Part shown: positions 1 through 23,297 of the stretch, piece by piece
Layout of the letters: each line of letters begins with the position of its first letter
Numbering within the stretch: position 1 is the stretch's first letter
Notes under the pieces: generated by a model
What the model saw: the letters and a program-made list of their open reading frames with translations, nothing else
The model's database searches: none
Told to the model about the DNA's origin: nothing
Assembly (NCBI GenBank): GCA_004431415.1
Contig: QPMI01000676.1
Coordinates: 1-24,044 of the forward strand
Direction: 5' to 3'
Origin: Cyanophora paradoxa CCMP329
Taxonomy: Eukaryota > Plantae > Glaucophyta
DNA: 24,044 nucleotides
Program-made: the position numbers and the translations under genes

Positions 1-261
1 TGTCTAATCGTGCGCGCGAGAAGCCCGTGCGGAGTGCAAGCTCGGCAGGGCGGGGTTTGGCGAGTGCTGCTGCTGTTAGCCACGTGATGGTAGACTGAGG
101 GTGTACCCGTCAACTACGGCGTACCCCGACACACGCATACAAATGACCGCGGCGCTTCTAACTAGCCTAGGCGCCGTCGGCCTAGCAGCACGAAGGCTGC
201 ATACATCATCTAGAGCCTAGCGGCTCACAATCGAGCATCCACTGTAAAGTCGGATGCGACA
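1..261 (-). repeat. 3' LTR (truncated by window start)
   Basis: Matches 16455-16727 with no substitutions seen by eye, only four 1-bp indels and one 10-bp indel. Ends ...GGATGCGACA at 261, next to the PPT. Confidence 0.95.
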
Positions 262-2930: not shown

Positions 2931-4269
2931 CAGCGAGTCCGCCTTCTGCGCAGCGAGCAGCCGGACTCGCCGCGCGGGAACATGTGGCCAGGGCCTCGGG
3001 CAGGGGCCCGTCAAGGGAAGGCGGCGGCGCGCATCCCAGGTGTCCTGGACCAGCTCCAGCAAGCGCGGCTTGCGCGGTCTCGACCTCGCCCAGCTCAGGG
3101 CCAGGGCGATGGCGCTGGACGAGAGAGCTCCTTCCAGCCCGCGGCTGGCCGCCGCTCGAGCCGGCGTCGCCGCTCGAGGGCGCCTCAGGGCAGCCGGCGG
3201 CTCAGATGAGCCCGCTGTCGCCGCAGTGGTCGACGCAGCCGCGAGGACGACGCCGCCGGGCGCCGCCCTCGGCCCCTCGTCGGGATCGTCCTGACGGGGT
3301 ACAGCGGCGGCCGCAGCGCCAGTGGCGCGGGTTGTCGGCCTGCGGGCGGTCTTGCCCCGGCGCGGGCCTCAGCGGACGCTGGTCGCGCGCAGGGCGCGAC
3401 AGGCCCCTCGTAGCGCCGCGTCCGACGGAGCCGGCGGCGTACGCGATCGAGGAGGGTAACGGGAACCCGTCCTCGTCGAGCTCAAGCTCGACGCCTCGCG
3501 CGGGCCTCAGGCCCGGCACGGCGGCGACCTCGCCATCGGAGCCCAGCTCCATGGGTCGGCCTCGGAGCCGGCGGTGGGCTCGGAGAGCGCGGGCCGGCGC
3601 AGGCCCTGCTCGACAGCGAGCGTGCCACTCGTCAACCTCCTGCCGCATCGCGGCCAGGTGTCGGCTTGCGGCCGCGCCGGTCGGCGGGCCGCCTGCGGCA
3701 GCTGCAGGGCTGCGGGCAGGGGCGCCTCCTGCCCACGGCAGGGCTCGGGGTTCGGGCGGCGCCGGGCCCCTGGGCTCGTCTTCGGCGTCCGCCGGCGCGG
3801 CTCTGGCGCGCGCTCGGAGCGGGAGACGGCTCATCGTCGGAGCCCTCTCGGAAGGCTCAGGCGGCGCGCGCGTCCGGCGTGGACGCGGCCCCTGGGCGGG
3901 CTGACGTCTCGCCTCGCGGCGGGAGCGCCCTCGAAGGCGAGCTGCGCCGGAGACGGCCTTCGCCTCGCGACGAGGATCTCCGCCCGACTCGGCGGGGCCG
4001 CCGGCGTTCGGCCTCGGCGGCCCAGGCGCATGGGCGGGGCCCGGCAGCGCGGCCTCGTCCGGCTATTCAGCCAGCTCGGTCAGGCGGGGCCCGGCGGGGC
4101 TTCCACGGCAACCCGGCTCCGCAGCGCCCTCGGCGCCCAGAGCGACTGCAAACAGCGGCAGCGGCTCATCGAGGTCGCCGGGCTGGCACGCCATGCCCCG
4201 CAGCGCCAGCCAGCGCGTCAGGCGCGGCTGAGCTGCCGTCGGCGCCGCCAGGGGCGAGAACCGGGTGGT

Positions 4270-5640: not shown

Positions 5641-6879
5641 TGCGAGCCGCATTCCGGGATTTTAGCACGTGCTCGGTTCCACTCCTCCTCTTCGGAAGAC
5701 GACGTCCCCGTCGTTTCCGGAGGCGCCCGCGGGGGCCGCCATGGGAGGTCCAGGCCTGGCCCGAGGCGGCTCGCAGCGGCGCCTTGCCCTTGTCCTTGCC
5801 GCGCGCGGCAAGAGGACTCGGCTGCAGAAGGCGCGCCCGGCGCGTCCGTGGTACGGACGGAGCAGCCAGGCCGTCCAGCGGCGCTGGTGCCGTCGCGGGC
5901 GGGCAGCAGCTGTGCTCGGCGCAGGCGCCGGCTGCTCGGCTGCGTCGGCAGCGAGATTTATTTGATCCCCGGAGGATTGGTTGGACTACGTTAGCCCCTT
6001 GACGCGCAACGCGCGCCGGCGGGCGCGGCGGCGTGCGGCGCGCTCGGCGCGGCGGGCCGGCCGGTTCGTTCACGCTCCTCTGGGAGGTCCAACCCGGGTA
6101 CCGACGTCGCGCTCGAGCTCCGAGTCGGTGTCGGACGACACCGGCTCATCGTGGAGCGCGAGGCCCTCCATCGTGACGATGGGGACCTCATGGCCCTCGT
6201 CGTCGTCTCGCGCATCATGCGGACAAACAGCGGAGGTGCGCTCGGCGCAGGCTCCTGCCCGTGGCTGCAGTCGCATCGGACTGCCGGGCGCGGGTGCCGC
6301 AAAGATAGGCCCCGGGCAGGGTGCTGGGGCGTCGGCGCGCCCTCAGCTGCCATATAAGCCGCGGCCGTTCGATTGGCCCGGCGACGCATCGAGCGGAAGC
6401 CTGGCCCCGTTTAGGGTAAAAGGCTCGCAGCGTGCGGATGAAAGTATCGCGACTGCGCGCACGGGCGCATCGTCTGGTGGCGGTCATACCCGAAGTCGCC
6501 GGGCGGCAGGTTGTTAGCCTCCGCCACCGCAACAACGGCCCCTGCTGGAGCAGGACGGGCTCATTGGCGGATTTAATAGCCGCACATGCAGGCTGCCGCC
6601 CGCGGCTGGCGCCGGTGCAGCTGGTGGGGCGCGAGTACCCGAGCGCCGACAAGGAGTCGGGCGCCGGCCCGACGGCGAGCGTCGGAGCCTGGTCCGCAGG
6701 CGGCGCAGGGCCGTCAATCACGCAGCGGACCATCCACTCGCGCGCGTCCTTCAGGACGACAGGGCGAAGGACCCGGACAAGGAGAGGCCCCTTCGCTTGT
6801 CCGGGCAGCAAAAAGGGATCACGTGGGGCGGAATTGCGCGTCGCGCGCGTGCAGGCACCAGCCAGAGCTGTGGTGTCTA

Positions 6880-7299: not shown

Positions 7300-10200
7300 A
7301 CTCCGGGACCGCGAGGTCCGACGGGCGGTCCGGGCCGTACCCGGTGAGGTCACCAGGGTCGGCGGCGGGCGTGGGAAGTGCAGCGACGAGCGCTGCGGCT
7401 GTTGCTGGCGTGCAACGCCGCGGACCGACTCTGCGGGGCTGCAGAGGTTTTCCGGTCCGGCCCGTCCGTGAGGGGCTGCGGCTCCCTGGTCGCAGCCGCC
7501 AGGACGCTTTCGGCGATGGACCGCGGCTGCAGTGCAGCGCGCGTCGCGAAGTCGTCCTCGCCGTCATCGTCCCCGTAGACACGGAGGACGGCGCGGGCGC
7601 CAGGACGGCAGCGGCCCTCGCCTGGCGCGCCTGGGCCTGCCCAATCAGCCGGAGCAGCTCGGATTCGATCCGATCGAACTGTTCCAAGCTGGGAACGGCC
7701 GCAGCCCAAATCGTCGCGGCGACGTTGAGGCCGCCCACGAGGCGCCGCTGGCAGCGTCGTGCCCGGAAGATGTGACCGGCGGCGGTCGCAATCTCGTCCA
7801 GGACTTCGGACAGAAGCGGCGGGCTTGCTTCGTTGCCAGCCTCGAGCAGGAGGCGCAAGCGAGCGCGCCAGTTTTTGGCGCTTGTAGTGGGCTGCACCGG
7901 CGCTGTCGCCGGGCGCCGGCGCGCCGGGGCCAGCAGGGCGGTCACGCCCGGCATCGGCGGCCCGTACATCATGCCCGGCGGCCAATAGTAGCCGCCGCCT
8001 CCGGGCATCTGAGGCATCAGGGCCGGTGGCGGCCCGCCCCAGGTGGGCCGCGGCGGCGGCGGCCCATGGGGAATGGCGGTACGCCGCGGCGTCAGCCGGC
8101 GGACACCGTGGGTGCAACGCGAGCCCGCTTGTTGCGGCGCTCGGCTTCGGCTAGGAGGCGGGCGCGCGTCTCCTCCGCGTGGGCGCCGGTGCGGGCGCGT
8201 CCTCGAGCTCGAGGCCGTGCTCACGCGCGACGGCAGCGAACGCTGCGTCATCGAGGCCGGCGAAGTCGTCGGCGTCGCTCGCCGCAGGCGCGGTCGAAGC
8301 GGTCACCGTGACGCGGTTGCCGTGCATCACGCGCCGGTCCCGGTGAGTGCCTTCACGGGCACGGCCACCGCGCGCACGGTCGGCGGGGACCGGGAGGAGG
8401 ACTCGCGCGGCGGGCCGAGCGAGCCTCGCGGCGCTCGGCTTCCGGGTGCTGCCGCTTCGCGCCTTGCGGCGTGCGGACGCACGGCGCCGTCAGGCACCGG
8501 CGAGCGGGAGGCGCGGGGAGCGGGGCTCGGCTCGCGCGACCCGGAGCCCGTTGTGCCCGAGGCAGAGGACGCTTCGTCCTTTGCCTTCTTGGCGTCGAGT
8601 CACCCCGGACCTGGGCCCGCAGGGTCTTCGGGATGACCTCGGGGCGGCGCCCGCTCCAGTGCATGAGGAGGGCAGCCGACATCCGGTAATGGAACGGCGT
8701 GACCGCCATTACCGTGGTGCCCAGGTCGGGCGCATCCGCAGGTGCGGGGAAGGGCGCATCCGGCTTAGCGACCGTGTCGAAAGCCGGCGCCGGCCAAAGT
8801 CGGAGACCAAGAGGCGCGGCGGGCGTGCGCTCGTCATGATGGGCCAGAGGACATCATTGATCTTCTGAACCCAGCTCAGGAGAGCCCGCGAGGTGGCTTC
8901 CTGGCCGTGGAGCATGTGATCCTCGCCAGCATGCGAGAGATGCCGGCGGCCCACGTGTCACGGTCGACGTGACAGAACTCGCGCATGCCGTGCGCGGTGG
9001 TACGGGCGGGCAGGATGCGCTCAAGGAGGCGAACATCCAAGCAGCCGACAGTGTCCTCATGCTTTGCGAGCAGTGCGCGAAGCTGAGTCGTCGCGGGCAA
9101 ACCCCAGATCTGCAGCATCGCGTCTGCGAGCTGCTTCTTCGACGCCGGCGCATTGTCGAGCCACGATGTGGCGACAGCGGTCGGGCGGGAAGGTCTGGCA
9201 TGGAGAACCAGAACAGGGTCGCCAGCGGAAGCTGGGAGGCCAGAACGAGGGCCGCGTACTCGTCGACAATGTCCGTAGGGACTTTGTCTTTGACGGTGTG
9301 GTAGACAGCGTAAAGCTCGTCACCATCGACCGTGCGCATGTGGCTACCGCGCTTGTCAGCGCTCAGAGTATTGCGGTCACCGCGATAGCAGATATCCCGC
9401 AAGAACTCATAGGCCGCGGTCGGCCCCACGACGTGCATCTGCACGTTGTACCCTGCCACCGGCGCCGGGCGCCGGGGCTCAGGCAGCTCGTGGCCGAGGA
9501 TCCAGCCGGCCAAGTGGTTCACATACCCCGCAAGCAGGGATGCGACGAACTCACGAGTCGGCAGCGGTGCCCACGTGGCGCCGTTCTCGGTGACGATGGG
9601 CAGACGAGCGGGTGCATCCGCGTCCCCTTGTGCATCGGGTTCACCGGCGGCCGGCTGGACTCGTACCCCAGCGTAAAGACGCGGGCGGCAAGCGGTCGAG
9701 CTGGCGACGCGCCTCCGCCTCGAGGGGTACTGCATCGCGACGTGGGCGGGCCCAGCGTGACGCGGATGGCGTTCTTCCGGCGGCGTCGCCGAGGACGTCG
9801 AGGGCGTTCGCATCGAGCTCAGCCGCGAAGGCACGCTCGGAGCTTAGGACCGGCTCGCCGGGGACGAGCATGCGCACGCGCGAGTCGGCTTGCGCGACTA
9901 CGCGGATGCCGAACTTGCGGCCGAAGCGCGGGTCCTTGAACGCGACCACGCGACTGCGCGGTGGTGCACGGTTCGGCCCCGCGTGGGGGTTGAACTGGTG
10001 CGGCCGGTGCAGGTACGCGTAGGACATGCGACACGTGTGGTGCATGACCGTGTTCAGCGTGGCGTACGCCTTCGTGATCGGCCCGTCCTCACGGAGCGGG
10101 AGAGCGGGCTCCGAGGAGACCCACTTAGTGATGTGCTCATCGAGCCCCATCATCGCGAGCACGTAGGGCAGGCCCTGGACGTCCGCACCCTCGAGGGTGG

Positions 10201-13200
10201 TCGGAGTCGGCGGGACCGGCGGCCCGTAGAGCAAAATCGCGGCAGGGATGCCGCGGTTATGCCCTTCGACGTTTCCAAGGACCGTCGAGGCGAGGCTGTG
10301 CAGAGCAGCATCGGCGTCGAGCGCGTCCGGGTGGAAGCGCGTTTGCAGGTGTGTGCCCGGGTTAAACACGGGGCCGCAGTCCCGTGGCCCGTTCTCGCCG
10401 TACATGAGAGTACGGAGGCGGGGATTGCGCCCCAGGGCTGCTGCTCGGCAACGTGTTGGTTGCGGAGCCCGCCCCGAGCGGGTCCGGGAGCAGCACGCAG
10501 TACTTTTCGCAGTACCGCAGGCGCTCGAGCGTGCCGTCGTACCAAGTGCGCGAGCCCGGAGGGGCTTGCGGGTCCGGAGCCGGGGGCTCGGAGGGACCGG
10601 CGGCAGCGGCGCTCGAGGCGGAGGCGGCGGCTGTGGCCTCGACCATGGGCGTGTCGCCCGCGGCGTCGCGCTCGTTCGCGCGAACGGCGCCGGCCCAGTC
10701 GTCGATCCACCGCACGAACGGCAGAGAGCGGATGACGACTTCCGCGCCCTCGACGGGGAAGTCGATTTCGCCCAGGGTCCAAGAGGCCCCTTCGACGGCG
10801 TTGTCGTACAGCCGAACCTCCTGGCTCAGCCAGGAGTCCGCGTCCATCTTTGCGGCGGCCCGCTGAACAACTTCGGAGATGTTCAGGTCCGGGGGTACAT
10901 GGAGGCGAGCTCGCAGACGAGACCCTCGCAACCCGGGTGCAGCGCGCGGACGCGCCCGTAGAAGAAGCGAACTTCTTCGGGCAGCTGTTGTTCCGAGTAC
11001 GGAACAAAGGGCACGGTTCCCGGACCAGTGCGTCCGCTGAACCAGCACGACATCAGCCAGCGTGCGTGGGCAGGCACGGGCTCGACGACATCAAGACCGG
11101 GCCCCGTGTTTTGGGACGCGCGCCAGCGGTCATTGACGTAGTATCCCGGCAGGCGGGAGACGTGGAACTCAAAGCGGTCCAGGAAAACCGCGTCCCAGTG
11201 GGAACAGGTCCACCGGTCCGGCTCCGTCGGGAGCTCAGGGCGCGGGTCAAGAGACCCGAGTTCCAGGCTGCAAGTTCGAACGACGCAACCGCGCGCCGTA
11301 GGAACCGCACGTTGGCGGGGTGCCGCTGGGGCACGCTCAGCTCAAGTCGCTCCCACGCCTCGCGCGAGCGTCTGCGTGGAAGTGGCTAAACCGGCGCCAC
11401 GGGGGCTGCGCGGTTTCTGCTGCGAGCCAGCCCTGGAGTTCGGGGTGGGGCTCGATTTGCAGCAGGAGCGGGTTCTGGGCCTGCGTGAGGCCACTGTTCG
11501 CGAGCCACATGTGCTCGACCGACGTCGACCAGTTGGACGACGGGGCGGGGCAACCGACGAGCTCAAAGAGCTTTGCGTCGATGCCGCCTCGGACGAAGAG
11601 CGCGTGCCACATGTGCTCACGGGCGTCGGCATCGATACCCGCATGCTCATCGGATTCCATGGCGTCTGGAGGCGGCGTGGCAGCGCCACCCTCGCCCTCA
11701 TCCGACGAGCCGGAGCCCGGGTCCGAACTGCCGCTGGCGGCGGCGCGGTCGCCGGGCGGCGAGCAGGGGCACCGCGGCGGGCGCGCGAGCCGCCTCGTCC
11801 ACGGCCCTCGGTGGTGCCGGCGGCTGCCGCAGTCGGCTTGCCGCGGCCACGGCGCGTGGTGGCGACTGTTCGGGCCAACGCATCGCACGAAGCGATGATT
11901 TCGTTATGCTTGTCCCACACCGAACTGTTGGTGTGGGGCCCTTATAGCGCCGGCGCACTTCGCCGTAGACCAACCGCATGCGGTGGGCCGGCTTATCAAG
12001 GAGCGTGGTGGCGTAAACGCCGGACTGCGACATGCAGTAGCAGACCCAGACGAACACACACCACGTGAATTCGCCATTGCGAGCGGCGGAATCCATTTCT
12101 CCTTGCAGCGCTTTCATGAGCCACAGGAACTCGGGGCTCGAGCGGCGCTCGTTCTTCACCAGGTCCGGCGGACCAAGGCGCGGGACGGCGCGGGAGGCGA
12201 GCAGGTCGAGCACGTCGACCTCGCGATGGTTATCGCGGCGGGGCACCGGATAACGGCGATCGAGGAACGCCTCGATGCTAGGCCCGCGCATCAGGGGGTC
12301 GGCGTCCGGGTGGTGCCGGAACCGGAGCCCCTCGTCGGACCGACGGGGCGGTCCACAACGACGGTGGGGGCAGCGCGGTACGTGCCAATCCCCAGGAGCC
12401 AGTCAGAGAACAGCAGAGAGCTGAACTCGTCGGGGCGCCGCGGGTCAATGAGCCGGGCCATGCGCTGCACGGCGACGCGCTCGGGCACGTAGACAACGCG
12501 CCACTTGTCCAAATCGGAGCCGTGCTGGACGAGCTCGGAAAGGTTGACGAGCGGGGCTCGCCCCGCACGCAGCGGGCGCGGCGCTCGCCTGTGTGGCCAG
12601 GACGCGAGCGGCGACGGTGCCCTCGGAGCTCTTGTCGAAGCAAGCAGCGCCGGCGACCTCACGCAGCCTTGCGGCATACGTTTGGTACTGAGTGACGGGC
12701 GGAGCCACGTCGTGAGGGGTGATCCACTCAAAGAGGCTGTTCTTGCCAAATCCCAGAGCCCCCGGAACGACCGTGAGGGTGCGGAAACGGATTATGGCCA
12801 GCAGCAACTGCACGCAGTATGCGTGGAAGTCGCAGTCCTCGTGGAGGATCTCGCGGGCTGCGGCGAGTGCCGAGCGCATCGCGTGATAGCCCGTCAGGGC
12901 CGGCGAGACCGGGGTATCGGGCGTCTCGTCCCAGTCCCGCGGGTCAAACGCCACGTCATACCCGTTGGCACTCTCAGCCAGGATGCGGGGCCACTGCAAG
13001 CCCGGCTGGGCGAGCAGGTACGCGGACGCGACGAGAAGGGACAAGATCGGCGAGCGATCAGAGTCGCTAAGCCAACTCGCCTCAGATGCGAGGTCCCAGC
13101 ATGCCGACTTCGGGGCATGCTGCTCCCAAGCGGCGAGCAGATCGTCCCACGCGCGCGGCGACGCGGTGTCGAACTCGAAGGCGAGATCGGGCCAGACGAC

Positions 13201-14199
13201 TTCGGAGTCGTCAGGCGGGGGACCGACCCCGGAGCACGAGCCCGGGTCCTCGGGGTGGGCGAACGCCGCGCGCAGAATTGCACGCATAGCGCGGCCGGAA
13301 TCCGGGCCCTCATGCAGGCGGTGGTCCGTGCGGGCGACCACGGCCGCAGTCTCGATCACGCAAGCGAGGTTGTTAACCTCGGTGCGCTGAGTCAAGCGAC
13401 CCAGGAGGAGACGGTCCGCGCGGTTCAGTCCGCAGGCGCCCAGGAAGCGATCGGCAACGATGCCGATCGTACCCTCGCCGGCAAGTTTGCGCACAAGCGG
13501 GATTTGCTTATGCCCCTCCATGCCGTTGGTGAAGAGGAGCCCGACGGCCCTCGACAGCGCGCGAGGCTCCGAGGCCAGCAGCGCGTACCACTTAGAGAGT
13601 GGCATGAGCAGGGGGCAATGCGGCGGACAATGAAGCGGCTGCCCTCGCGTTGCGAGTCAACGAGCACGCTCTCGGTGTGGTCGCCGGGCATGTACCGCAG
13701 CCCGGTGGGCGCGGACATTGGCTTTTTCTCGACGTATTCGAGACCCGAGCCCTTGCCGCAGGGATCCAGGGGGTCGGACTCCGAGCGGACGCTCAGTCCG
13801 TCGGCGTCGGTCTCGCCGATTTCCGAGTCCCTGAGCCATCGTCGCATGCCGGGCTGGCAAAGCGCAGGGCGGCCTCGAACTCGGTCTCACGCGCGGCGTC
13901 GTCAAGGGCGCCGGCAGCGAGGGTCGAGGCGGCCGCGTCGAAGGCGGCCTGGTCACGCGCCCGGGCGGCGGTGACGCTGGCGTCGGCCGGCTGGCGCACG
14001 GCGGCGACGGGGACGCTGAGGTCCATGTCCGTCTCAGTGCCCACGGGCATCACGAGGACGGACTTGATCGACGGGTCGCCGGTTGGGGCGCCCGGGCCGG
14101 GCTTGCTGCCTGCCGAGGAGGAGCTCGCGGCACGCGCGGCCTCGTGCAGGGCTTGCTGCTGCGACTGAACCAGCAGATGCTGGAAGAATTCAGCCATGT
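7300..14199 (-). CDS. Large uncharacterised polyprotein segment between nucleocapsid and protease (frameshift-fragmented)
   Basis: Overlapping minus-strand ORFs with globular, W/Y/F/C-containing composition tile the interval without gaps: 13425-13847, 12445-13605, 12291-12749, 11698-12291, 11337-11888, 10883-11077, 10362-11048, 9641-10405, 8854-9834, 8876-9118, 8709-8954, 8353-8709, 7166-8251. I recognise no known domain with confidence. Confidence 0.75.
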
Positions 14200-15946
14200 G
14201 GGCAGCGCCCGGGTTCGGCGGCTCGGAGCGCGGCGGATCGCCTCCGGCGCGAACTTGGTTGAACCGGGGCCGGGGCCCGCGGTTCTGCTCGGGGCCATAG
14301 CCGCGGCCGCGGCCGCTCTGGGCGTTGCCCTGGGCGGAGGGGCAATCCCGGCGCATGTGGTCCAGCGAGCCGCAGGTCCAGCAGCCTCGCTGCTCATCCT
14401 GCTCGCTCGTCTCCTTACCCTTCCCCAGTGGGCGCTGGTTCGGGCCGGAGGCCGGGCCACGGCCGGAGCCGCCGGCGTAGCCGCTGCGGGCGCCGCCGCG
14501 GAACCCGCCGCGGGCTTGGAAACCGCCCCGGGGGTACGGCTCCTGGCGGTGTCCACCGCGGTGGGCGTAACCGCCGCGGGTCGGGCCGGGGTCCCCGCGC
14601 TCGTCGCGGTCGGGGCCCTCGTCCTCACGGGTCGCGCGTTCGCGGCGCTTCAAGCCCGCCCGCTTCTCAGCGATCCCTTCACCCAGTCGGCGTACGGGAT
14701 GCCGGGGAACGGGGCCGTGCCCCACGCGCAATTCCACGTAAAGTGGCAGCGGTCGAGGGCCGGCATCTCCACGTGCATGCACAGGGGGCATGGCATCGTG
14801 GTGGTGCACGGGTACCCTAGGTTTTCCTCGTCTGGGTGCCGGCGGCTCGAGACGGGGGCGCCCGGCGGCGCCTTGGTGCCAGGGGCGGCGTGCACCGATT
14901 TCGTCGGGACGGCCTCGTCAGGCTCGTCCGCGTCATCGGCCGCCACGGCCATTTTGCGCACGCGGGGGCGCTTGGTCTCAGGCGCCTCGGGCGCGACCAT
15001 GACCTGGGGCGGCAGCACGGTACGGCAGCCGTGCGTCTCGCATGCCTGGAGGAATAGATCGTCCAGCTGGAGCGGCGACAGGGCGCCGTCCAGAGCGAGA
15101 ATGCGCTGGTCCAGCGCAGTGAGGAACTCGCGCAGCGTGCGCTCGTTCAGCTTCGCGAACCCGGCCATCCGAACATCAAGGTTCTGATATTCCGGGTCCT
15201 CGCTCGTCGCACGGGCCTCAAGCGCAGTGCGCAGGCACTCGGCGTAGTACACGGCGAGGCGCTGGCCCGTCGGCAGCGTGTGCCGGACGAGAGGCAAGAA
15301 CCAGTCGTGCCATGAGCGCGGATCCTCGCCCGTGTAGGGCTCAGTGAGGGCCCGGCGGGCCGCGTGCGGGCGCGCCTTGTGGATCCACGCCGTGATCGTG
15401 TCTAGCAGCCCGGGGGCACGCAAGTACGCATCACGCGTGGCCACGATTGAGGCCTCATCACGCGCGCAGCTCTGCTGCAGCGCGAGGATCGTGGCGTCGT
15501 CATCGGCAGAGCGCAAGTTCGCCGGACGAGCTCAAGGCGCCGCAGCGTAGCGCGGTCACGCTCCAGGCCAGCAATAGAGGCCTCATAGAGGTCGCGCTTA
15601 CGCTCGATTACGGCGCGGAGGGCGCCGGGGCGGATGCGCCCGACGATCACTCCGGCAAGAGCCTCGGACTTAGTATACTCCTGGCCGCCGGCAGCGTCGG
15701 GGCCAAAGAGATACTTCGTCGGCTGCGCCGACTGATAGTTCCGGACGTCCTTGCGGAACCGGTCACCATCGCGAGGCGGGGCTGGGCGGGCAAGAATCCG
15801 ATCCGCGCGGGATCGTCATCAGCCACAGCCGAGGCGCCGGGGGCGGCGTACTGCACAGCAAGTTCGGCCTTCGCAGGCTCAACATGCGCGAGCGCAGACA
15901 GCTGGCTCCGGACTTCAGAACTAAGAAGTTCCGAGGAGTTTGACAT
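14200..15946 (-). CDS. gag: Gag-like region (frameshifted in this sequence): helical capsid-like part, variant CX2CX11HX4C motif, RGG-rich tract and canonical CCHC zinc knuckle
   Basis: Chained ORFs 15647-15946, 15402-15650, 14650-15516 and 13793-14809. CWTCGSLDHMRRDC at 14342-14383; CPLCMHVEMPALDRCHFTWNC at 14728-14790; RGGYAHRGG...RGGFQARGGFRGG. Confidence 0.8.
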
Positions 15947-16409
15947 GTTGTTCTCTTTGCAACGTAAAGCCGCAAGAACAAGATGCCGGGGAGAGCACTA
16001 GGCGCGGGATTTGATCTGCAGCTCGCTGCAGAATCCGGCGCGGGGATCTCGCGGTCACGCAAGAGCGCGACTCAGGGACACTTAGAGAGCTGCTCGCAGC
16101 AGTCTCCGTGGCACGGTTGCTCGCAACCGGCGATGGACAGGCAATGATGAGACTCTCGAGAGAGAGCTCGGCGCGTGCGCTTCGGTCTGGGGATGACCCG
16201 AAGCCCGCGATAGGCACTAGAGACGTTTCCGGTGCACTACCGTCCAACCGCAAGCGGTACAGGGCGGCGCACTCAAACGCAAAGCAACCGTGGGACGGCG
16301 CTCGCGCGGAAAGCAGGTCTCTGGCTCCAATAGGCACTGGGCAAGGCGGCGCAGCGATGCGCGCTGCGCGGCGGGGCTGGGGAGAGCGATACGGACTCAG
16401 ACCCTTGAA

Positions 16410-16434
16410 GGTTCGATTCCGGCAGAATGGCGCC
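16410..16434 (-). promoter_or_regulatory. Primer-binding site complementary to a tRNA 3' end (tRNA-Sec-like geometry)
   Basis: The + strand reads GGTTCGATTCCGGCAGAATGGCGCC and abuts the 5' LTR: T-loop consensus, 13 nt, G, then CC(A). Confidence 0.85.
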
Positions 16435-16727
16435 TGTCGCGTGCGAGATTAGTGTGTCTAATCGTGCGCGCGAGAAGCCCGTGCGGAGTGCAAGCTCGGC
16501 AGGGCGGGGTTTGGCGAGTGCTGCTGCTGTTAGCCACCGTGATGGTAGACTGAGGGTGTACCCGTCCAACTACGGCGTACCCCGACACACGCATACAAAT
16601 GACCGCGGCGCTCTAACTAGCCTAGGCGCCGTCGGCCTAGCAGCACGAAGGCTGCTTCGTGCTGCATACATCATCTAGAGCCCTAGCGGCTCACAATCGA
16701 GCATCCACTGTAAAGTCGGATGCGACA
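16435..16727 (-). repeat. 5' LTR (293 bp)
   Basis: TG...CA ends with imperfect terminal inverted repeats: TGTCGCGTGCG at 16435 versus the reverse complement of the other end, TGTCGCATCCG (9/11 match). 16455-16727 aligns to 1-261. Confidence 0.95.
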
Positions 16728-17763
16728 CAGTCATGATCACTGAGTGTTGGTTATATTTTCGAGCAAACATCGACCACAGAACTGATCATGAAGAGGTGCA
16801 GACACCTTCACGCATCGGCCAGCTGCAGGGCGCCGGCCTCGAGATCGGCGGCGAGGTCAGAGAGGAGGAGATCCTCGTCGAATTCCGCCTCCGCCGAGTC
16901 GGCGCCCTGCGCGCGTTCACGGTTCATCATTCGCGGGTTGCACGCGCGGCTCGACGATTTGTCACTGAGTCAGCTGCTCACCTCGACATCGGCCTCGCTC
17001 ACGGTGGCCGTAGTCTCATCAAGGCACAACTTGCCGCTAATTTGGAGACGATAATCAGCAGGCGATCGACGCTGAAGCGTCGGCGGAGTGGTGATCATAA
17101 ATGATGATCAACGCACCGCATCCGGTCATTGGTCTGTTGATACGATAACATTACAGACGGCGTCAGCCGGAACCTTCCGTTAACGTACTCCACAGACCCC
17201 GCGCCAACAGACGATTGCGAATACGTAGTGGTGGGGACCGGTGGTGACATACTGGGGAGGTTGATGGCGCCGGTGTTAGCGGCCATTGCTGCTGATTCCG
17301 AATTGCCCATCTTATGCTTTGAAGAAAGAGGCTGGAACGCGGGCGCAAGCCTTGAAGCCTTGAAGGATCCCGGAGGAGCTCAGCAACCCGCTCGCTTTGC
17401 GCGTCTGACCCGAGAGACCGTGCGCGCCGCCGGGCCGATGCTGCACGACGTGCCAGATTGCAACAAGCTGCAGCGGCTCAGAGCCTCAGACCCTCCTCGC
17501 AAGTTGAACTGGTTGTAGACTTGTACCGGGGTAGTAGGAGACGGTTTGCGGCCCCAAATTGCCTACTCATGATCAGGCTACTGAGGCTAGTAGGAGACGG
17601 TTTGCGACCAAAAAAAACAAATCAACGGTCCGCACCCCCAAAAAACGGCGTGCTAAGAGCCTAAGACACCCTAGGAGTCTAGGACAGCCTAAAAAAATAG
17701 TTATGCAAACTAGGATTTTTTTTTTTGGTGAATTACCGGCCACCGGAACCTGCAGGCTGCACC

Positions 17764-18469
17764 CAGAGTTCATACATACACGCTGTCTAATTCATGCTTT
17801 CCGTGTTCGAATCGCCCTGCGATGAGAATCACGCCTTCGAATCCCGCCCGCTCCACATAATTCCGATCGATCATGTCCCACCTTGCCTGTATACGCCCCC
17901 GCAGTGCTGGAGTAGACTAGAGGCTGTGGCCGGTAATTCACCAAAAAAAAAATGCACCCAGAGTTCCAAAATGTTTTGTGGGCCCAGGAGACCCCCAAAA
18001 AATTTTAAAAAATTTAAAAAAGTTTTGAAAAATTTCTCAAAAATTTTTGCCATACAAACGAGAAGGCACGTTCCAGAGGCGCGCAAACGCGCTCTAAACG
18101 TGCTCTTAAGGTCCTCTTAACATTCTTGTAGCATGGGAAGTGGTCAGAAGTTTTATTTCGAGCCCATTTGGGCGAAGGCACACTCATGAATTTCCTAGGG
18201 CTCGCCAGGGGTACAGTGAGGTCTGACCCTTATCGACGTGCAGAGTGCCCGGCGGCCCCTATCGCATTGCTTATCGCTTAAACTTCATTATACATGCAAG
18301 AGATACGTATAGGAAGCTTATTACGACGTGTTCTGCACGAGAAAAGGGCCCCCCGAATATTTTCTCGAGAAAAAGTTTTTGAGCGTCCAGCCGAGACCAA
18401 AACATTTTGCAAAAACTTTTACAAAAACTTTTGTTTTATTTTTCGAAAACTTTTTCGGCCGGAACCCTG
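17764..18469. mobile_element. hAT-type MITE; its left end is interrupted and duplicated by the retroposed insertion (body 17959-18469)
   Basis: 8-bp TSD GCTGCACC at 17756-17763 and 18470-18477; termini CAGAGTTCC / GGAACCCTG; A/T-tract subterminal repeats at both ends. Confidence 0.7.
17772..17952 (+). mobile_element. Short poly(A)-tailed retroposed insertion (SINE-like or 5'-truncated LINE) with 14-bp TSD
   Basis: TGCACCCAGAGTTC at 17758-17771 and 17953-17966 flanks a 181-bp segment ending in A10 (17943-17952). Internal GTTCGAATC and TTCGAATCC B-box-like words. Confidence 0.65.
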
Positions 18470-18681
18470 GCTGCACCTGATAACCATATGCATTGAATGG
18501 GACTGTGCTACGGTAACAGTTCGTATTAACTTCGGAAGTTCGTAACTTAGTAGTAACATCGCCGCGGCGCGATCGGCGGCGGGCCTCCCGGCCCGGCGGG
18601 CCCCGGCTTCAGTACTAGTAACTAGTAGTAAGTTGCTCCATACGGACTTATAATTACTAAGTTGGTAAGACTTATAGTATA

Positions 18682-18928
18682 CCGTGTAATACTTACTAAG
18701 TTAATTACCGCGCTGACATAACTACTGCGCTACCATATTACTGCGCTCAAAATTTTTAGAACGCAGTAATTTGGTAGCGCAGTATATATACCCCCTTGGC
18801 TAGTATTACCCCTATTTTCGAGGCCATTATTACTGGAACGCAGTAATTTGGTAGCGCAGTAAAGCGCTAACCGGCGTAGAAATTTTAGAACGCAGTAATT
18901 TGTGGCGCAGTAAATAAGTGTTACACGG
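18682..18928. mobile_element. Tc1/mariner-pogo-type MITE (247 bp)
   Basis: TIRs CCGTGTAATACTTA / TAAGTGTTACACGG (13/14 match), TA on both flanks, many internal TACYGCG / CGCAGTA motifs. Confidence 0.7.
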
Positions 18929-19133
18929 TATACCGCGCTGACTTAACTACCGCGCAGCCAGGTCCGCGCTGCCAAATTTTTTTAAATTACCGCGCTAAAA
19001 AAATTACCGCGCAAATTACTGCACATGCCATGATGCGTTCTTCAAGAAGTTGACAAGAACCGTTGAACCGTTGAACGGAGCGCCTCTCGAGCTCCCAGCT
19101 GCCAGCTGGAGATGGACCCCGAGGACCTGGAGG

Positions 19134-19523
19134 TAGGGTTGGCAGCTTGAAATTTCAAGCCATTGAAATTGCATTGAAATTGAAAATTCAATTTCAATTT
19201 CAACGCCGCCCGTTGAAATTGCATTGAAATAGAATATAAAAATAATAAAATATATTGAATTTCTCCGTTTTCGCACCCTCAGCTTCCCCTTCCCAGCCCC
19301 TCCGGCCTTCCCGGGAGCCCTCCCAGCCCGTAAAGAGACTCAGAGAGTGAGAGTGAAGTCGATTAGAGACAATTCAGAGTGAAAGAGACTCTCCGCAGTG
19401 CGTGGGGTCTCTGCAAGTGCTGCACTGCGGATTGGAATTTCAATTGAATTTTCAAAGCTTTCAAAGGGTCGACTTTCAGTTTCAACGCCAAATTTTTGAA
19501 TTTCATGAAATTCACCAACCCTA
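19134..19523. mobile_element. hAT-type MITE (390 bp)
   Basis: TIRs TAGGGTTGG / CCAACCCTA; perfect 8-bp TSD CCTGGAGG (19126-19133, 19524-19531); TTGAAA/TTTCAA subterminal repeats. Confidence 0.9.
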
Positions 19524-19563
19524 CCTGGAGGACCTGGAGGCTGGAGGAGGACCTAGTCTCAAC

Positions 19564-20151
19564 CAGTGCTGAGTAAAATTTACTCCCCAAAAATTGGCCT
19601 GAAAACTTTCTGCATGCGCAAGCTTAAGCTTTGGAAAATTATGTGCAAATATTTGCGCCATTGAAAACATTCCAAGCACCGCAAAAGCACTGTATCTCGT
19701 AGCTATAGCAAATAAGCGTCTAAACGAGCTCGAGAGATATGGGCTTTACGATGATACCTGTACATGTGCGTTTAGATTCAAAATACGCAAGCGTTTTGTC
19801 TTGTTTCAAGTTTTAATTTGGCATTCTTTTCAGAGTCGCCGATCGCGAGAGGGGGGTACCCATCTTAATGAAGCGACCTTCGCCCTCCTGATCATGACGC
19901 CCATGTAGCTCTCTCACCTTTAAAACTATGCCAGAACCGAAGGGAATGCCGCGAGCAGCCGATAGACCTTGCTCGTAATTGGCGGTGGGGTACCGGTGGG
20001 GTGCGGAGGGGGGGTCAAGCTTAAGTCACTGAGTGCAAATTTACTGAAAGTTTTCTATAGTTGCCGGCGGGGATGAAAATTAACTAGTACTGAAAGTTTG
20101 CAAGAAAATTTTCAACTGAAAGTTTGCCCAGCGCAAAGATACGCAGCACTG
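19564..20151. mobile_element. hAT-type non-autonomous element (588 bp)
   Basis: TIRs CAGTGCTGAGTA / TACGCAGCACTG (11/12 match); perfect 8-bp TSD GTCTCAAC (19556-19563, 20152-20159); CTGAAAGTTT subterminal repeats. Confidence 0.9.
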
Positions 20152-20430
20152 GTCTCAACTCAGTGACTTGTACTATGATCAGGCTCGAGCTTTACAAGAA
20201 TTCGAACGGCGAGCTTTTCCAGGCTTATATGCATCATGCATGACCAGCTTCCCCCACTTCCTCCTCAGGGTTGCAACCGACAGCGCCCTGCTGCATGCGG
20301 GCGCGGCGGACCGGAGGCGTCCTCCGGATCCGGGCTGGCTGGGCGATCGCTTCAGGATGTACTGCCCGAAGCGCGAGCTATTCGGCGACGAAGCCGACGA
20401 GTAGCTCCTCTTCCGATCCCTGCTGTGCTT

Positions 20431-20760
20431 CCCCCCCCCACCCCACACCCCCCACCCCCACCCCCCCTCCCCCCCTCCCCCCCCTCCCTCCCCCCCCCCC
20501 GCCCTCCCAGTACCTGCGCTCCCGCCCTCCCAGTCCTGCGCCTCCCCCTCCCCCCTCCCCCCCCCTTCCCCCCCCCTCCCCCCCTCCCCCCTCCCCCCTC
20601 CCCCCCACTCACCCCCTCCTCCCCCCCACCGCTTCCCCGCCCCCCATCGCCCCTCTCCACCCCGCCGGCCCTGCCCCTTCCCTCCCTCACCCTGTCGCCT
20701 CCCTCCCTCGTTCCCCTTCTCGCCCTGTTTCTCTCGAGCTCCCTTTTGAGCACCTTGTCT
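20431..20760. repeat. C-rich low-complexity tract (G-quadruplex-capable on the minus strand)
   Basis: Dozens of C4-C10 runs separated by single A or T bases. A shorter G-rich counterpart lies at 22021-22062. Confidence 0.85.
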
Positions 20761-20784
20761 GCATCCCTCTCTCGTCTTCCCTGT

Positions 20785-21983
20785 ACCACACCCCACCCCA
20801 GTCGCCAATTCTTCACCCCGCTTTAATACGCTGGTTGCTCATACGAGAAGTAAATACGAGAAGTAAATACACGGAGACTCCATCACTACGCCCACTGACG
20901 ACCTCACTCTCAACCTATCACCTACGGCCGCTCGCCGGGCCCTCGCGCCCGCCGCCGACCCGCCGTCGCCTGCGCGACTTGCGCCTCCACACGTCCCTCG
21001 CTACCGCCGACACGCTCGCCTCCCGCCGCCACCGCTGCTCTTGCTCCCCCTGCCCTCTCTCGCCCGTTGCCCGAGTCGCCTTCCCCCACGGCCCCACCCT
21101 CCACCCACTCTGCCCCTGCCATTCTGCTGATCTCCCGCTACCCCAGGGAGGGGACGGTGGTGCGGGCTGCCAGGTGGAAGGTCGTCAGTCGGCCGCTGAA
21201 CCCACCGGCGCCTGCCCGGCACGCGCCAGCCGGGCGGTTCGGACCGCCGCGGAGGGGGCTCGTCCATTGCCCGCGGCGGGGGGAGGCGCGTCGGCGGGCG
21301 GCTGGAAGCCCGGCGGAACGCGCCACTGGAACCTCCCTCCTCCCGACCGCGGCTGCCCGACCCGTCCTCCCCGTCCTTTCCGCGCCCAACGTCGCCCCAT
21401 GCCGTGCCCTCCTCCCTGCCCCCGTCCCCCTTCCCCCGACCAATCTCCCCGATGCTCTGAACCCGGCGGCTCCACCAGGCTTGCTCTCGCACGAGCGAGC
21501 CCCTGACCCACCGCCGTGCCGACGACACGGCGGGCCGTCTCTAGCGTGTTACAGAGTGGACTAGATTATAGTGCGCCTTCTCGGAGGCCCTAGCTTACTA
21601 GGCATAGCGCTAGCTACAGCTGCAGCTCACTTCGCTGCCGCAGTGCCCACCTCTGATTTCTACTCTCGTCCCTGGTAGTCATCGATATCCCTCTCCCGCG
21701 TAGGATCTTTCCTGTGCTGCAGCTCTAGAATTAGCCCCCTGGGTAGCTTTTCCAGTTCAACGGTTATTTCCACATCGAGCTCCACCCGGTCCGATGTCCG
21801 AAAGGCTTAGTCCCGTAGGCTCATCTCTCGACTTGACACAGATGGACACCTCAGTTATATCTCTAGCCATTTGTCTCGGTGTGTGCGAATTCATTATAAT
21901 TATGACCACACCCCACCCCAGTCGCCAATTCTTCACCCCGCCTTTAATACGCTGGTTGGCTCATACGAGAAGTAAATACACGG
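20785..21983. repeat. Pair of ~80-90-bp direct repeats enclosing ~1.03 kb
   Basis: ACCACACCCCACCCCAGTCGCCAATTCTTCACCCCG...AGTAAATACACGG at 20785-20874 (with a 13-bp internal tandem duplication) and 21905-21983. Confidence 0.85.
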
Positions 21984-22086
21984 CTACAACGTGCGCCCCG
22001 CGAGTGTCCTCGCTACAGGAGGGGGGGTGGGTGGGGGTGGGTTGGGGGGGGGGGGGGGGGGGCGGTCTGCTGAAAAGGGTGGGTGA

Positions 22087-23297
22087 TCAATGTTGCTGTG
22101 GTAGCTTGTTCTTGGGGTAGTATACTTTGACGTCCTGGCGCCAGCCGCTGAGGACGCCCTTCGCCGCGCTGTACAGCAGCGCGTCGTCTGTGCCCACGTG
22201 CATGTTGAGATGCGCGTTCAGGCCGCGGAGGCCCTGCGCAGGAAGGGTCCAGTTAGGGAGCGCCGCGCGGAGCGAGGGTTTCGTGGAGATGGTAACTGAC
22301 CTCGAGGACGAGCAGGTCCGCCCCGCTGTCCAAGAAGCACCGGATCTCCACGCGCCACGGAGACGAGCAGGCCGCGAGCGCCGCGACCTCCTCCGCCGCG
22401 AGGGGCCTCCTGATGAAGAGATTGAGCCGGTGGTCGGGGACGCGGGAGGCAACTGCGACGAAGTCCGCGAGGGCCGCCGGGTCCGTGCCGCCCGGGGCTG
22501 CGCACGCCGCGCTCAGAAATGGGCGGGGCGAGGGGTACACGATTCGACGGACCGTCGAGGACGAGAGAAAGGTCCTTGAAGGAGCGGGAGGCGCGCACGG
22601 CGTCGGCGAGGCCGGCGATGAAGGGCGCCGCGCTCCCCGCGGCTCTCCTGAAGCGGATGTCGAGCCAGCCGAGCTTGGGGGCCGCCCCCAACGCCGCCAC
22701 GTCCTCCCGAGAGACGTCGTCGTCGATCTGCGACAGCCTCGGCGGAAGCTCAAACCGGCAGGGGCGGCGGGGCTCACTTTGAAGCCCTCCAGGGATCGCA
22801 GCTCGGGGAGGCGGGCCACGGCGCGGAGGTCCTCCCCGTTGAACTTGTAGCAGGGCCTGCGTAGCGACGTCGCTGAGCTGGACCGGTGTACTCCTGAGCA
22901 AAGCTGCAAGATCCGACAGACGTGACGGCTGGTTGAAGGACATCGGCCTTCTGGCGCACGCGCTCAGCTTGCGGAAGACGGAGACCTGGATGGTCCCCCG
23001 CCACGCCTTGCACACGCTGCCCCGGCAACTCAGCGATTTAGAATGATGCGGTGAGATCGAGGCGCTCAAAAGCGCACGGGCGAAGGGGCCACGCCTCCTC
23101 CAGCGAAAAGAAAGAGAAAATGTGCGCGAGGAGCTCGTCCGAGAGGTCGCCGATGCTCGCTTCGACTCGTTTCGCGACGCTCGACTCGTTCTCCTGCAGC
23201 GAAGTGTCATCGCCCGCAGGCCGGCGCGCGCGAGGCGGGAAGAGCGCGCGAAGCGCGAACTGACCGCGAGACGGCTCCGTTTCGCTGCGGGTTCCAT
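22087..23297 (-). CDS. F-box protein with LRR/RNI-like C-terminal region; spliced, with apparent indel frameshifts
   Basis: Start MEPAAKRSRL. Removing a 61-nt GT..CAG intron (23017-23077) gives IGDLSDELLAHIFSFFSLEEAWPLRPVCKAWRGTI, an F-box consensus. Downstream LxxLxL-like segments (LPELRSLEG, PKLGWLDIRF, FKDLSLVL). Stop at 22087. Confidence 0.75.

Follow-up and report, generated by a model that had tools for sequence, protein, structure and literature searches.

In a Ty3/Gypsy retrotransposon of Cyanophora paradoxa, about 7.1 kb of coding sequence lie between the nucleocapsid zinc knuckle (14389–14336) and the DTG motif of the protease. This insert, here called the cargo, is probably an integral coding part of a multi-copy element family, kept by selection, and is common to a diverged sister family. 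Gag, cargo and protease share one reading frame, which gives an ORF1 of ~3,060 codons, extending from 15946 to the TGA stop at 6753–6751. The cargo itself comprises ~2,375 codons (14335–7210), i.e., about 2,400, and is best read as an accessory region which is specific to the lineage and belongs to a giant polyprotein of Gag, cargo and protease. All positions refer to the window, the whole stretch of 24,044 nucleotides which was analysed (contig QPMI01000676.1).

One LTR element of 16,727 bp was seen in the window, on the minus strand, with an internal region of 16.2 kb (Table 1). Both LTRs are short (~265 bp); they differ by no substitution and by five indels, four of them 1-nt changes in homopolymers and one of 10 nt, and the element is young. 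A purine-rich, PPT-like tract is located at ~263–274, just inside the 3' LTR, and a stretch resembling a tRNA T-arm 20–75 nt inside the 5' LTR; no canonical TGG PBS follows the 5' LTR, and no tRNA was detected in the PBS region by ARAGORN or Rfam. Judged from its sequence, i.e., by its LTRs, its Ty3-like RT and RNase H and its CCHC knuckle, the element is a member of the Ty3/Gypsy group (Metaviridae).

Table 1. Features of the Cyanophora paradoxa element, listed in element sense (window coordinates).
Feature	Position	Strand	Remarks
5' LTR (element sense)	16455-16727	-	TG..CA, direct repeat of 1-261
gag	15946-14700	-	ATG at 15946; sister-family alignment and codon-position GC
Nucleocapsid CCHC zinc knuckle	14389-14336	-	Pfam zf-CCHC, E 1.8e-5, above gathering score
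Cargo linker 1	14335-13615	-	rich in Q/S/A/D, poorly conserved
Cargo blocks A, B	13614-11944	-	~560 codons; best-conserved part of the cargo
R/G/A-rich linker	11940-11700	-	precedes blocks C-E
Cargo blocks C, D, E	11699-10446	-	gene-model alignments; GC3 0.77-0.87
Cargo blocks F, G, H	10423-8590	-	colinear with P0003 and P0009
Linker 3, block I, pre-protease linker	8589-7210	-	low-complexity linker 3 from 8589 to ~8110; block I at ~8100-7620
Putative retropepsin	7209-6751	-	motif and position; D of DTG at 7125-7123
RT and RNase H	5640-4270	-	RT 5640-4830, RH 4690-4270
Putative integrase	3000-1560	-	HHCC-like, core and GPY/F-like tail, by eye; broken by frameshifts
3' LTR	1-261	-	TG..CA; starts at window base 1

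The order PR-RT-RH-IN was read by eye, with PR and IN assigned from motifs. A second protease motif, LLVGIG, follows ~80 residues after the DTG. The best PDB matches of the RT were the Ty3 RT (4OL8, E 5.5e-10) and the Ty3 Gag-Pol (7Q5B); the Pfam families RT_RNaseH (E 1e-11) and RT_RNaseH_2 (E 3.6e-11) both scored above gathering, and RVT_1 was weak. HHCC, core and GPY/F motifs of the integrase are present at 2900–1600, with a Pfam rve match of only E 0.19. This weak score, as well as the lack of a Pfam or PDB-sequence match for the putative retropepsin, is attributed to the indels which fragment the window. The spacers between PR and RT (~370 codons) and between RH and IN (~400 codons, 78% GC) have a period-3 signal at background level. 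The TGA stop follows the protease, and the gene models P0005, P0006 and P0009 all end there. RT, RNase H and IN are in the -1 frame after this stop, so that their expression would need recoding, unless the shift to the -1 frame likewise stems from an error in the assembly.

All protein matches to the window were gene models of C. paradoxa in EukProt (EP00741). Colinear models were found on 11 other contigs, where they read straight across the frameshifts of the window; these contigs are tig00020510, 20555, 20556, 20675, 20710, 20960, 20961, 21622, 21623, 00520 and 00788. Five of these contigs carry the same family, with 96–100% identity, and six carry the sister family, with 52–71% identity in the cargo and 80–88% in gag (P0005 and P0008, aligned from 15913 to 14674). 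The segment is thus present in other copies as well as in a diverged family, which was a test suggested by the first-pass annotation. Independent models provide colinear coverage from 15913 to 8473 and from 7619 to 6754: gag, CCHC knuckle and cargo blocks A–E are joined in the single models P0008 and P0011, both of which carry the same zf-CCHC knuckle, and the cargo is joined to the protease in P0009 and P0006. No gene model spans the entire ORF1, and predicted introns remove large parts of the cargo in P0005, P0006 and P0009.

Compared to same-family models, the window contains ~25 single-base deletions and four insertions in ~4.6 kb, many of them in runs of G or C, and codon identity to these models is 98–99.6%. 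The source assembly was obtained from PacBio RSII data with Canu (PMC6704402). Breaks of a single base, for the most part deletions in G/C runs, together with LTRs that have indels but no substitutions between them, point to long-read assembly errors rather than to decay. The earlier proposal that the frame changes are 1-nt artefacts agrees with these indels and with the other copies, which read through; the two junctions given as examples (DPL/MRGPSIEAF and GTTV/MAVTPFHY) are located inside continuous reading in P0008 and P0009.

The length of ORFs was rejected as coding evidence. At a GC content of ~70% it is uninformative; in dinucleotide shuffles long ORFs were almost as numerous, and the plus strand behaved alike. 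A frame path from a self-trained codon Viterbi procedure was also discarded, its signal being too weak to trust, and frames were set instead by homology-guided, frameshift-aware alignment. In the cargo frames defined in this way, GC1/GC2/GC3 amounted to 0.66–0.72/0.45–0.56/0.77–0.87, which is the same pattern as in gag (0.71/0.52/0.84). The period-3 signal was 0.26 for the cargo, compared to 0.28 for gag and 0.10 for shuffles.

The cargo consists of conserved blocks, complex in composition and rich in hydrophobic and aromatic residues, which alternate with poorly conserved linkers of low complexity; gaps in the alignments with the sister family are concentrated in the linkers. Linker 1 is 56–64% identical to the sister family, decreasing to 29% at 13829–13608, and is read through by the same-family model P0006 with 97% identity. 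Blocks A–B showed 97–100% identity within the family (P0004, P0006, P0007) and 54–71% to the sister family (P0001, P0002, P0008, P0010, P0011). For blocks C–E the values were 96–98% (P0003, P0009) and 52–69% (P0008 and P0011, as far as 10704), respectively. Blocks F–H were compared with same-family models alone, sister-family models not being represented there; 755 of 768 codons were identical to P0003/P0009, which originate from other contigs, single-base indels being allowed for. The region 8473–7619, a low-complexity linker and one block, is without an independent gene model. Within it, the period-3 signal is coding-like at ~8100–7650 and at background level at 8250–8150, as it is also at 8650–8500. 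From 7619 to 7210, coverage is provided by P0009 and P0006.

Pfam searches of minus-strand pieces, long plus-strand ORFs and full gene models yielded zf-CCHC and pol domains only; no cargo domain was obtained from cargo pieces or gene models at E<=1. NCBIfam and PDB sequences (sequence and profile searches) gave no match to the cargo, and Pfam and PDB sequence/profile searches gave none to gag. When 1.84 billion representative proteins were searched exhaustively with a profile of blocks A–B, only six proteins were returned, all borne by these elements, and no stand-alone C. paradoxa gene related to these blocks. Word-based protein searches with blocks F and G found element copies only, or nothing; the empty result for block G should be given little weight because of its length filter. 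Metagenome, IMG/VR and prokaryote genome collections contained no match to the cargo. The domains may therefore be called novel, as the first-pass annotation had proposed: the blocks are without a match in Pfam, NCBIfam or PDB sequences, and A–B are without relatives outside the elements among the representatives searched.

The same annotation had described the blocks as globular-looking, which was not confirmed. AlphaFold2, with alignments from two lineages, gave pLDDT values of only 33.5 and 30.0 for blocks A–C and E–H, respectively, and the models are unusable. The cargo is predicted to be mainly alpha-helical. Neither a catalytic or nucleic-acid-binding signature nor a convincing membrane-spanning segment was detectable in it. 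Internal LTRs or TIRs were absent from the cargo, a BLAST self-comparison revealed no internal repeats, and by hhalign the cargo is unrelated to gag, and its halves are unrelated to each other.

Several other explanations of the insert need to be considered. A nested transposon or a local insertion in this copy, or decay of the copy to a pseudogene with real frameshifts, would be in keeping with the many frame changes in the window, and the contig from which P0004 stems apparently has these breaks too. This is highly improbable, however, and largely refuted, by the lack of internal LTRs and TIRs, the same architecture on the 11 other contigs and in the sister family, LTRs without substitutions, and breaks of a single base, often in G/C runs, with nearly complete codon identity to other copies, in an assembly of the PacBio/Canu type. 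The colinear models and missing internal LTRs or TIRs bear out the earlier view that the insert belongs integrally to the element, on the same strand and in frame. The two families could, on the other hand, go back to an ancestor which had captured one or several host or foreign genes, in which case the cargo would be of cellular or viral and not of de novo origin. LTR elements are known to take up ORFs (PMC6431247), and an architecture of several unrelated blocks would fit stepwise acquisition; yet the profile search with A–B returned element-borne models only, the searches with F and G gave element copies or nothing, and the metagenome, viral and prokaryotic collections were empty, so that capture appears very unlikely.

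The cargo might also be removed facultatively, through splicing, in a fraction of the transcripts, most Gag or Gag-PR being made without it, comparable to the intron which is found between gag and pol in Ogre (PMC9289625). This would make the stoichiometry of so large a Gag less of a problem, and some BRAKER/Augustus models do jump over cargo sequence (P0006 from 12961 to 7434, P0005 from 12889 to 6919, P0009 from 8473 to 7619), with GT and AG present in the window at the junctions of P0006. But the junctions of P0005 and P0006 differ, and a conserved splice site is thus not evident; chance GT-AG pairs are common, a gene predictor needs introns to bridge assembly frameshifts, and the predicted introns of P0004 coincide exactly with breaks in the window. 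Splicing of this kind is considered unlikely. It is distinctly unlikely, too, that the cargo represents tolerated filler in a bloated lineage, open only through its position between gag and pol and without a function of its own. The element is indeed bloated elsewhere, in its PR-RT and RH-IN spacers, the cargo evolves faster than gag, and AlphaFold2 found no confident fold. However, the blocks retain 52–71% identity across the families, compared to 29% in a linker, and gaps are mostly in linkers; the period-3 signal and GC3 of the cargo equal those of gag and not those of the true spacers, and the hydrophobic and aromatic-rich blocks are not of low complexity.

With respect to known systems, the planarian elements Burro/GYPSM1 come closest in layout; they were reportedly described by Grohme (2018) and Jurka (2007). 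Their ORF1 encodes 4,873–5,140 aa within an internal region of up to 25 kb, and their cargo includes AIR1, Smc, MATH, BIR, ankyrin, BCL2-like, SUMO-like, env-like and dUTPase domains (PMC6431247). This precedent shows that a polyprotein with such a cargo is viable (PMC6431247). The first-pass annotation had considered the position between knuckle and protease unusual; the cargo does lie there in frame, but a precedent exists in Burro/GYPSM1 (PMC6431247), and this layout was previously documented mainly for these elements. Burro and the Cyanophora element are both Gypsy-type, multi-copy and young, with a huge ORF1 that begins with gag and CCHC knuckle and continues in frame with cargo before PR-RT-RH-IN. 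In contrast to Burro, the Cyanophora cargo is without Burro's domains by Pfam and without a convincing membrane segment, the internal region is smaller (16.2 kb), and the host belongs to the glaucophyte algae.

The pro ORF of betaretroviruses contains a dUTPase between NC and PR, which is freed by the viral protease. The location of accessory sequence between nucleocapsid and protease is similar, but the dUTPase is one small enzyme of known fold, whereas the Cyanophora insert is more than 10 times larger and gave no dUTPase signal by Pfam. Positions of dUTPases vary among elements (PMC6431247). Plant Ty3/Gypsy elements of the Ogre/Tat lineage and the orchid element Gypsy_Pa_2799 are likewise oversized, with lineage-specific extra coding capacity; there, the extra ORFs are separate and either precede gag or follow pol, and much of the size is due to LTRs of 1.9–6.5 kb (PMC9289625), in contrast to an in-frame cargo inside the polyprotein and LTRs of ~265 bp. 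The Gypsy/Ty3 element Cer1 of C. elegans is similar in its enlarged orphan GAG region and in a lineage-restricted accessory protein, CERV, whose homologues are absent outside the host clade. Its GAG has 690 aa, however, and CERV is produced from a spliced mRNA and an ORF downstream of pol, not from sequence inserted in frame between NC and PR (PMC10309623).

The preferred reading, a maintained accessory region, would imply translation of the cargo within one giant Gag-cargo-PR polyprotein, which the element's own protease may cut at the linkers, releasing several accessory proteins that could travel with the particle. Their roles would most likely be structural or regulatory rather than enzymatic, e.g., in particle assembly or trafficking, or in dealing with factors of the host or with its silencing, since catalytic, membrane and nucleic-acid-binding signatures are lacking and the prediction is mainly alpha-helical. 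Awkward for the polyprotein reading are the ~2,400 extra residues on every Gag molecule, which count against it with respect to particle assembly. Rather tentatively, the cargo may represent several folds which arose or became fixed only in glaucophyte retroelements and supply the capacities of accessory genes, a second and independent origin of the Burro-type strategy, in the Archaeplastida. If so, such folds could perhaps help the element to export or traffic its RNA, to suppress silencing by the host, or to spread from cell to cell.

To our knowledge, mobile elements of glaucophytes are almost undescribed. The genome paper of C. paradoxa gives LTR elements as 1.77% of the genome and nothing further on them (PMC6704402). 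In EukProt, fragments of the two families described here are listed as C. paradoxa gene models in at least 11 cases. This type of element raises the questions how particles are assembled from a Gag of ~3,000 residues, whether the cargo is spliced out or cleaved off, and which roles the orphan domains have. The Cyanophora element shows that conserved orphan sequence of ~2,400 codons can be accommodated within a Gag-protease polyprotein by a retrotransposon whose LTRs are short.

In the window, whose overall composition is ~70% GC, a single LTR retrotransposon was found, oriented along the minus strand. No substitutions separate its two LTRs; they differ only in four homopolymer indels of 1 nt each and in one 10-nt indel. 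The order of domains, as read from the sequence, fits Ty3/Gypsy, and the top matches of the RT fragment among solved structures were Ty3 RT 4OL8 (E 5.5e-10) and Ty3 Gag-Pol 7Q5B. The putative protease (PR) was called from two motifs ~80 residues apart and gave no matches in Pfam or PDB sequences. Two oversized spacers are present inside pol on the minus strand, one of ~370 codons between PR and RT (5650-6750) and one of ~400 codons from RNase H to integrase (3050-4260; A/P/R/G-rich, 78% GC). Between the integrase end and the 3' LTR, two 71-nt direct repeats (1258-1413) were found, with 79% identity and 85-nt spacing.

Features of the element, and Cyanophora paradoxa gene models from other contigs as aligned to the window
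Feature	Position	Strand	Remarks
LTR pair	1-261 and 16455-16727	minus (element)	ends TG..CA
zf-CCHC	14389-14336	minus	Pfam match
Putative protease	7125-7123 (D of DTG)	minus	DTG in hydrophobic strand, later LLVGIG
RT_RNaseH / RT_RNaseH_2	4688-4328	minus	Pfam match
Integrase motifs	2900-1600	minus	recognised by eye; Pfam rve reaches only E 0.19
P0006 (same family)	14197->12961 and 7434->6754	minus	gene-model alignment
P0004 (same family)	13605->11340	minus	gene-model alignment
P0003 (same family)	10895->9971	minus	gene-model alignment
P0009 (same family)	10847->8473 plus 7619->6754	minus	gene-model alignment
P0008 (sister family, 1,510 aa)	15913->11370	minus	gene-model alignment
P0011 (sister family, 1,417 aa)	15297->10704	minus	gene-model alignment

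The first-pass annotation had placed a protein-like cargo between the zinc knuckle and the protease. Long open frames are no evidence of coding in this DNA, since 8 ORFs of ≥200 codons at 7300-14340 compare with a mean of 4.6 in dinucleotide shuffles, and the antisense strand presents a similar picture. The cargo was confirmed by three other sources, namely other copies, conservation versus a sister family, and codon-position composition. Gene models of the same family showed 96–100% identity to the window; in the sister models P0008 and P0011 a single reading unites gag, the CCHC knuckle and cargo blocks A-E (conserved segments, lettered from gag towards PR). Compared with the sister family, identities were 80–88% for gag, 56–64% around the knuckle, 52–71% for cargo blocks and 29% for the acidic linker at 13829-13608; alignment gaps were concentrated in linkers. 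In homology-defined frames, GC1/2/3 of the cargo blocks was 0.66–0.72/0.45–0.56/0.77–0.87 (gag, 0.71/0.52/0.84), and the sliding period-3 signal of the cargo (0.26) was close to that of gag (0.28), compared with 0.10 for shuffles and 0.06–0.12 for LTRs and leader. The sole cargo segment without an independent gene model is 8473-7619, which appears coding-like at about 8100-7650 and not at 8250-8150; 8650-8500 is likewise not coding-like.

Frameshift-aware alignment of the same-family models to the window gave 98–99.6% identical codons, together with ~25 single-base deletions and 4 insertions in ~4.6 kb, many within G/C runs; the 1-nt frame shifts noticed earlier are thus supported. Natural decay is expected to produce an excess of substitutions over indels. 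The indel-only LTR differences point to long-read consensus error, rather than natural decay, as the source of the frame breaks. The element is accordingly young, and other copies of its family possess intact-looking reading frames. In P0004 (tig00021622), predicted introns fall exactly on the frame breaks of the window, and identical wrong frames are read; the window probably represents this contig or else a copy with the errors in common. The assembly was obtained from PacBio RSII reads with Canu, followed by Quiver polishing and Illumina correction (PMC6704402). Among the "genes" annotated in C. paradoxa, at least 11 (P0001-P0011) are pieces of these two retrotransposon families, and several of them contain predicted introns which merely span assembly frameshifts.

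Neither LTRs, TIRs nor repeats were detected within the cargo, which also showed no relationship to gag, and the identical layout was present on 11 other contigs, in two families. The absence of a nested element, as originally read, therefore holds, the segment does occur in other copies, and a copy-specific insertion or a decayed window copy is essentially excluded. Another explanation would be a cellular or viral gene, captured long ago, whose relatives have all been lost. All protein matches obtained were C. paradoxa gene models (EukProt EP00741, naming tig..._g....t1); when 1.84 billion representative proteins were searched with a blocks A-B profile, six matched, all from these elements, and word-based searches with blocks F and G found one element copy or nothing. 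Scans of metagenome, IMG/VR and prokaryotic genome collections yielded no matches. For the cargo, none of the separate pieces and none of the full gene models had a match in Pfam, NCBIfam or PDB sequences, in agreement with the novel domains proposed at first. P-loop, HExxH and extra D[TS]G motifs in the right context were absent, as were convincing transmembrane segments (the top Kyte-Doolittle 19-residue mean was 1.6, in a stretch containing arginines). AlphaFold2, with shallow two-lineage alignments, predicted mostly helices, but at pLDDT of only 33.5 and 30.0.

The cargo could also be tolerated filler, since the two spacers inside pol (PR to RT, RNase H to integrase) are oversized as well; however, the period-3 signal of these spacers is at background level, and they lack the coding signal seen in the cargo. 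Facultative splicing is suggested by three gene models which jump over large cargo portions, but their skip junctions disagree, and a gene predictor is forced to bridge assembly frameshifts somehow. Most likely, Gag, cargo and PR would be made as one polyprotein of ~3,060 codons; cleavage of its linkers by the protease of the element would then free accessory, probably non-enzymatic proteins.

All models reaching the protease (P0005, P0006 and P0009, from two families) end at a common TGA (6753-6751, minus), ~35 codons past the protease motifs, after which protein-like pol reading resumes in the -1 frame (region 6753 to about 6640). Pol expression may thus need recoding, which, from frame positions, is suggested to link ORF1 (gag-cargo-PR) and ORF2 (RT-RH-IN); no canonical slippery heptamer was seen. 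Alternatively, a common homopolymer error may mask a continuous gag-pol frame.

At the expected place of the PBS, 20–75 nt inside the 5' LTR, the sequence 16380-16434 is tRNA-like on the plus strand, antisense to the element, with a T-arm motif (GGTTCGATTCC) and an acceptor-like end. ARAGORN and Rfam reported no tRNA there, and TGG does not immediately follow the 5' LTR; this stretch could represent a primer-binding region that is extended or unusual. An imperfect inverted repeat (16436-16474) across the boundary of 5' LTR end and leader forms a predicted hairpin on the element strand (105-nt fold, -36.4 kcal/mol, z -2.7). The flank at 17000-20000 has 44–54% GC, versus 65–75% otherwise. Tandem repeats rich in A/T occur in it, together with short palindromes or inverted repeats (17717-17743 with 17926-17952; 18723-18784); it may be the remnant of another mobile element, or intergenic DNA. 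Further on are a 200-nt poly-C-rich tract (20431-20630), whose G-rich inverted partner (22018-22061) is 1.5 kb off, and a 75-nt direct repeat (20785-20857 and 21905-21979; 97% identity, 1.1 kb apart). Long ORFs at 20271-21506 (plus) and 22218-23297 (minus) had no Pfam matches.

No description of this Cyanophora element family was found in the literature. Among known elements, the planarian Burro/GYPSM1 comes closest: its ORF1 of 4,873 aa holds numerous domains, an env-like one among them, placed in frame after the gag knuckles and before PR (PMC6431247). The in-frame layout is common to both, although the Cyanophora element is smaller, resides in a glaucophyte and has none of the recognisable domains of Burro. 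In contrast, the extras of Ogre, Tat and orchid 2-ODD elements are separate ORFs (PMC9289625), and CERV of Cer1 is made via a spliced mRNA from an ORF downstream of pol (PMC10309623), not between knuckle and PR. What is new here is a Burro-type in-frame cargo of orphan domains in Archaeplastida.
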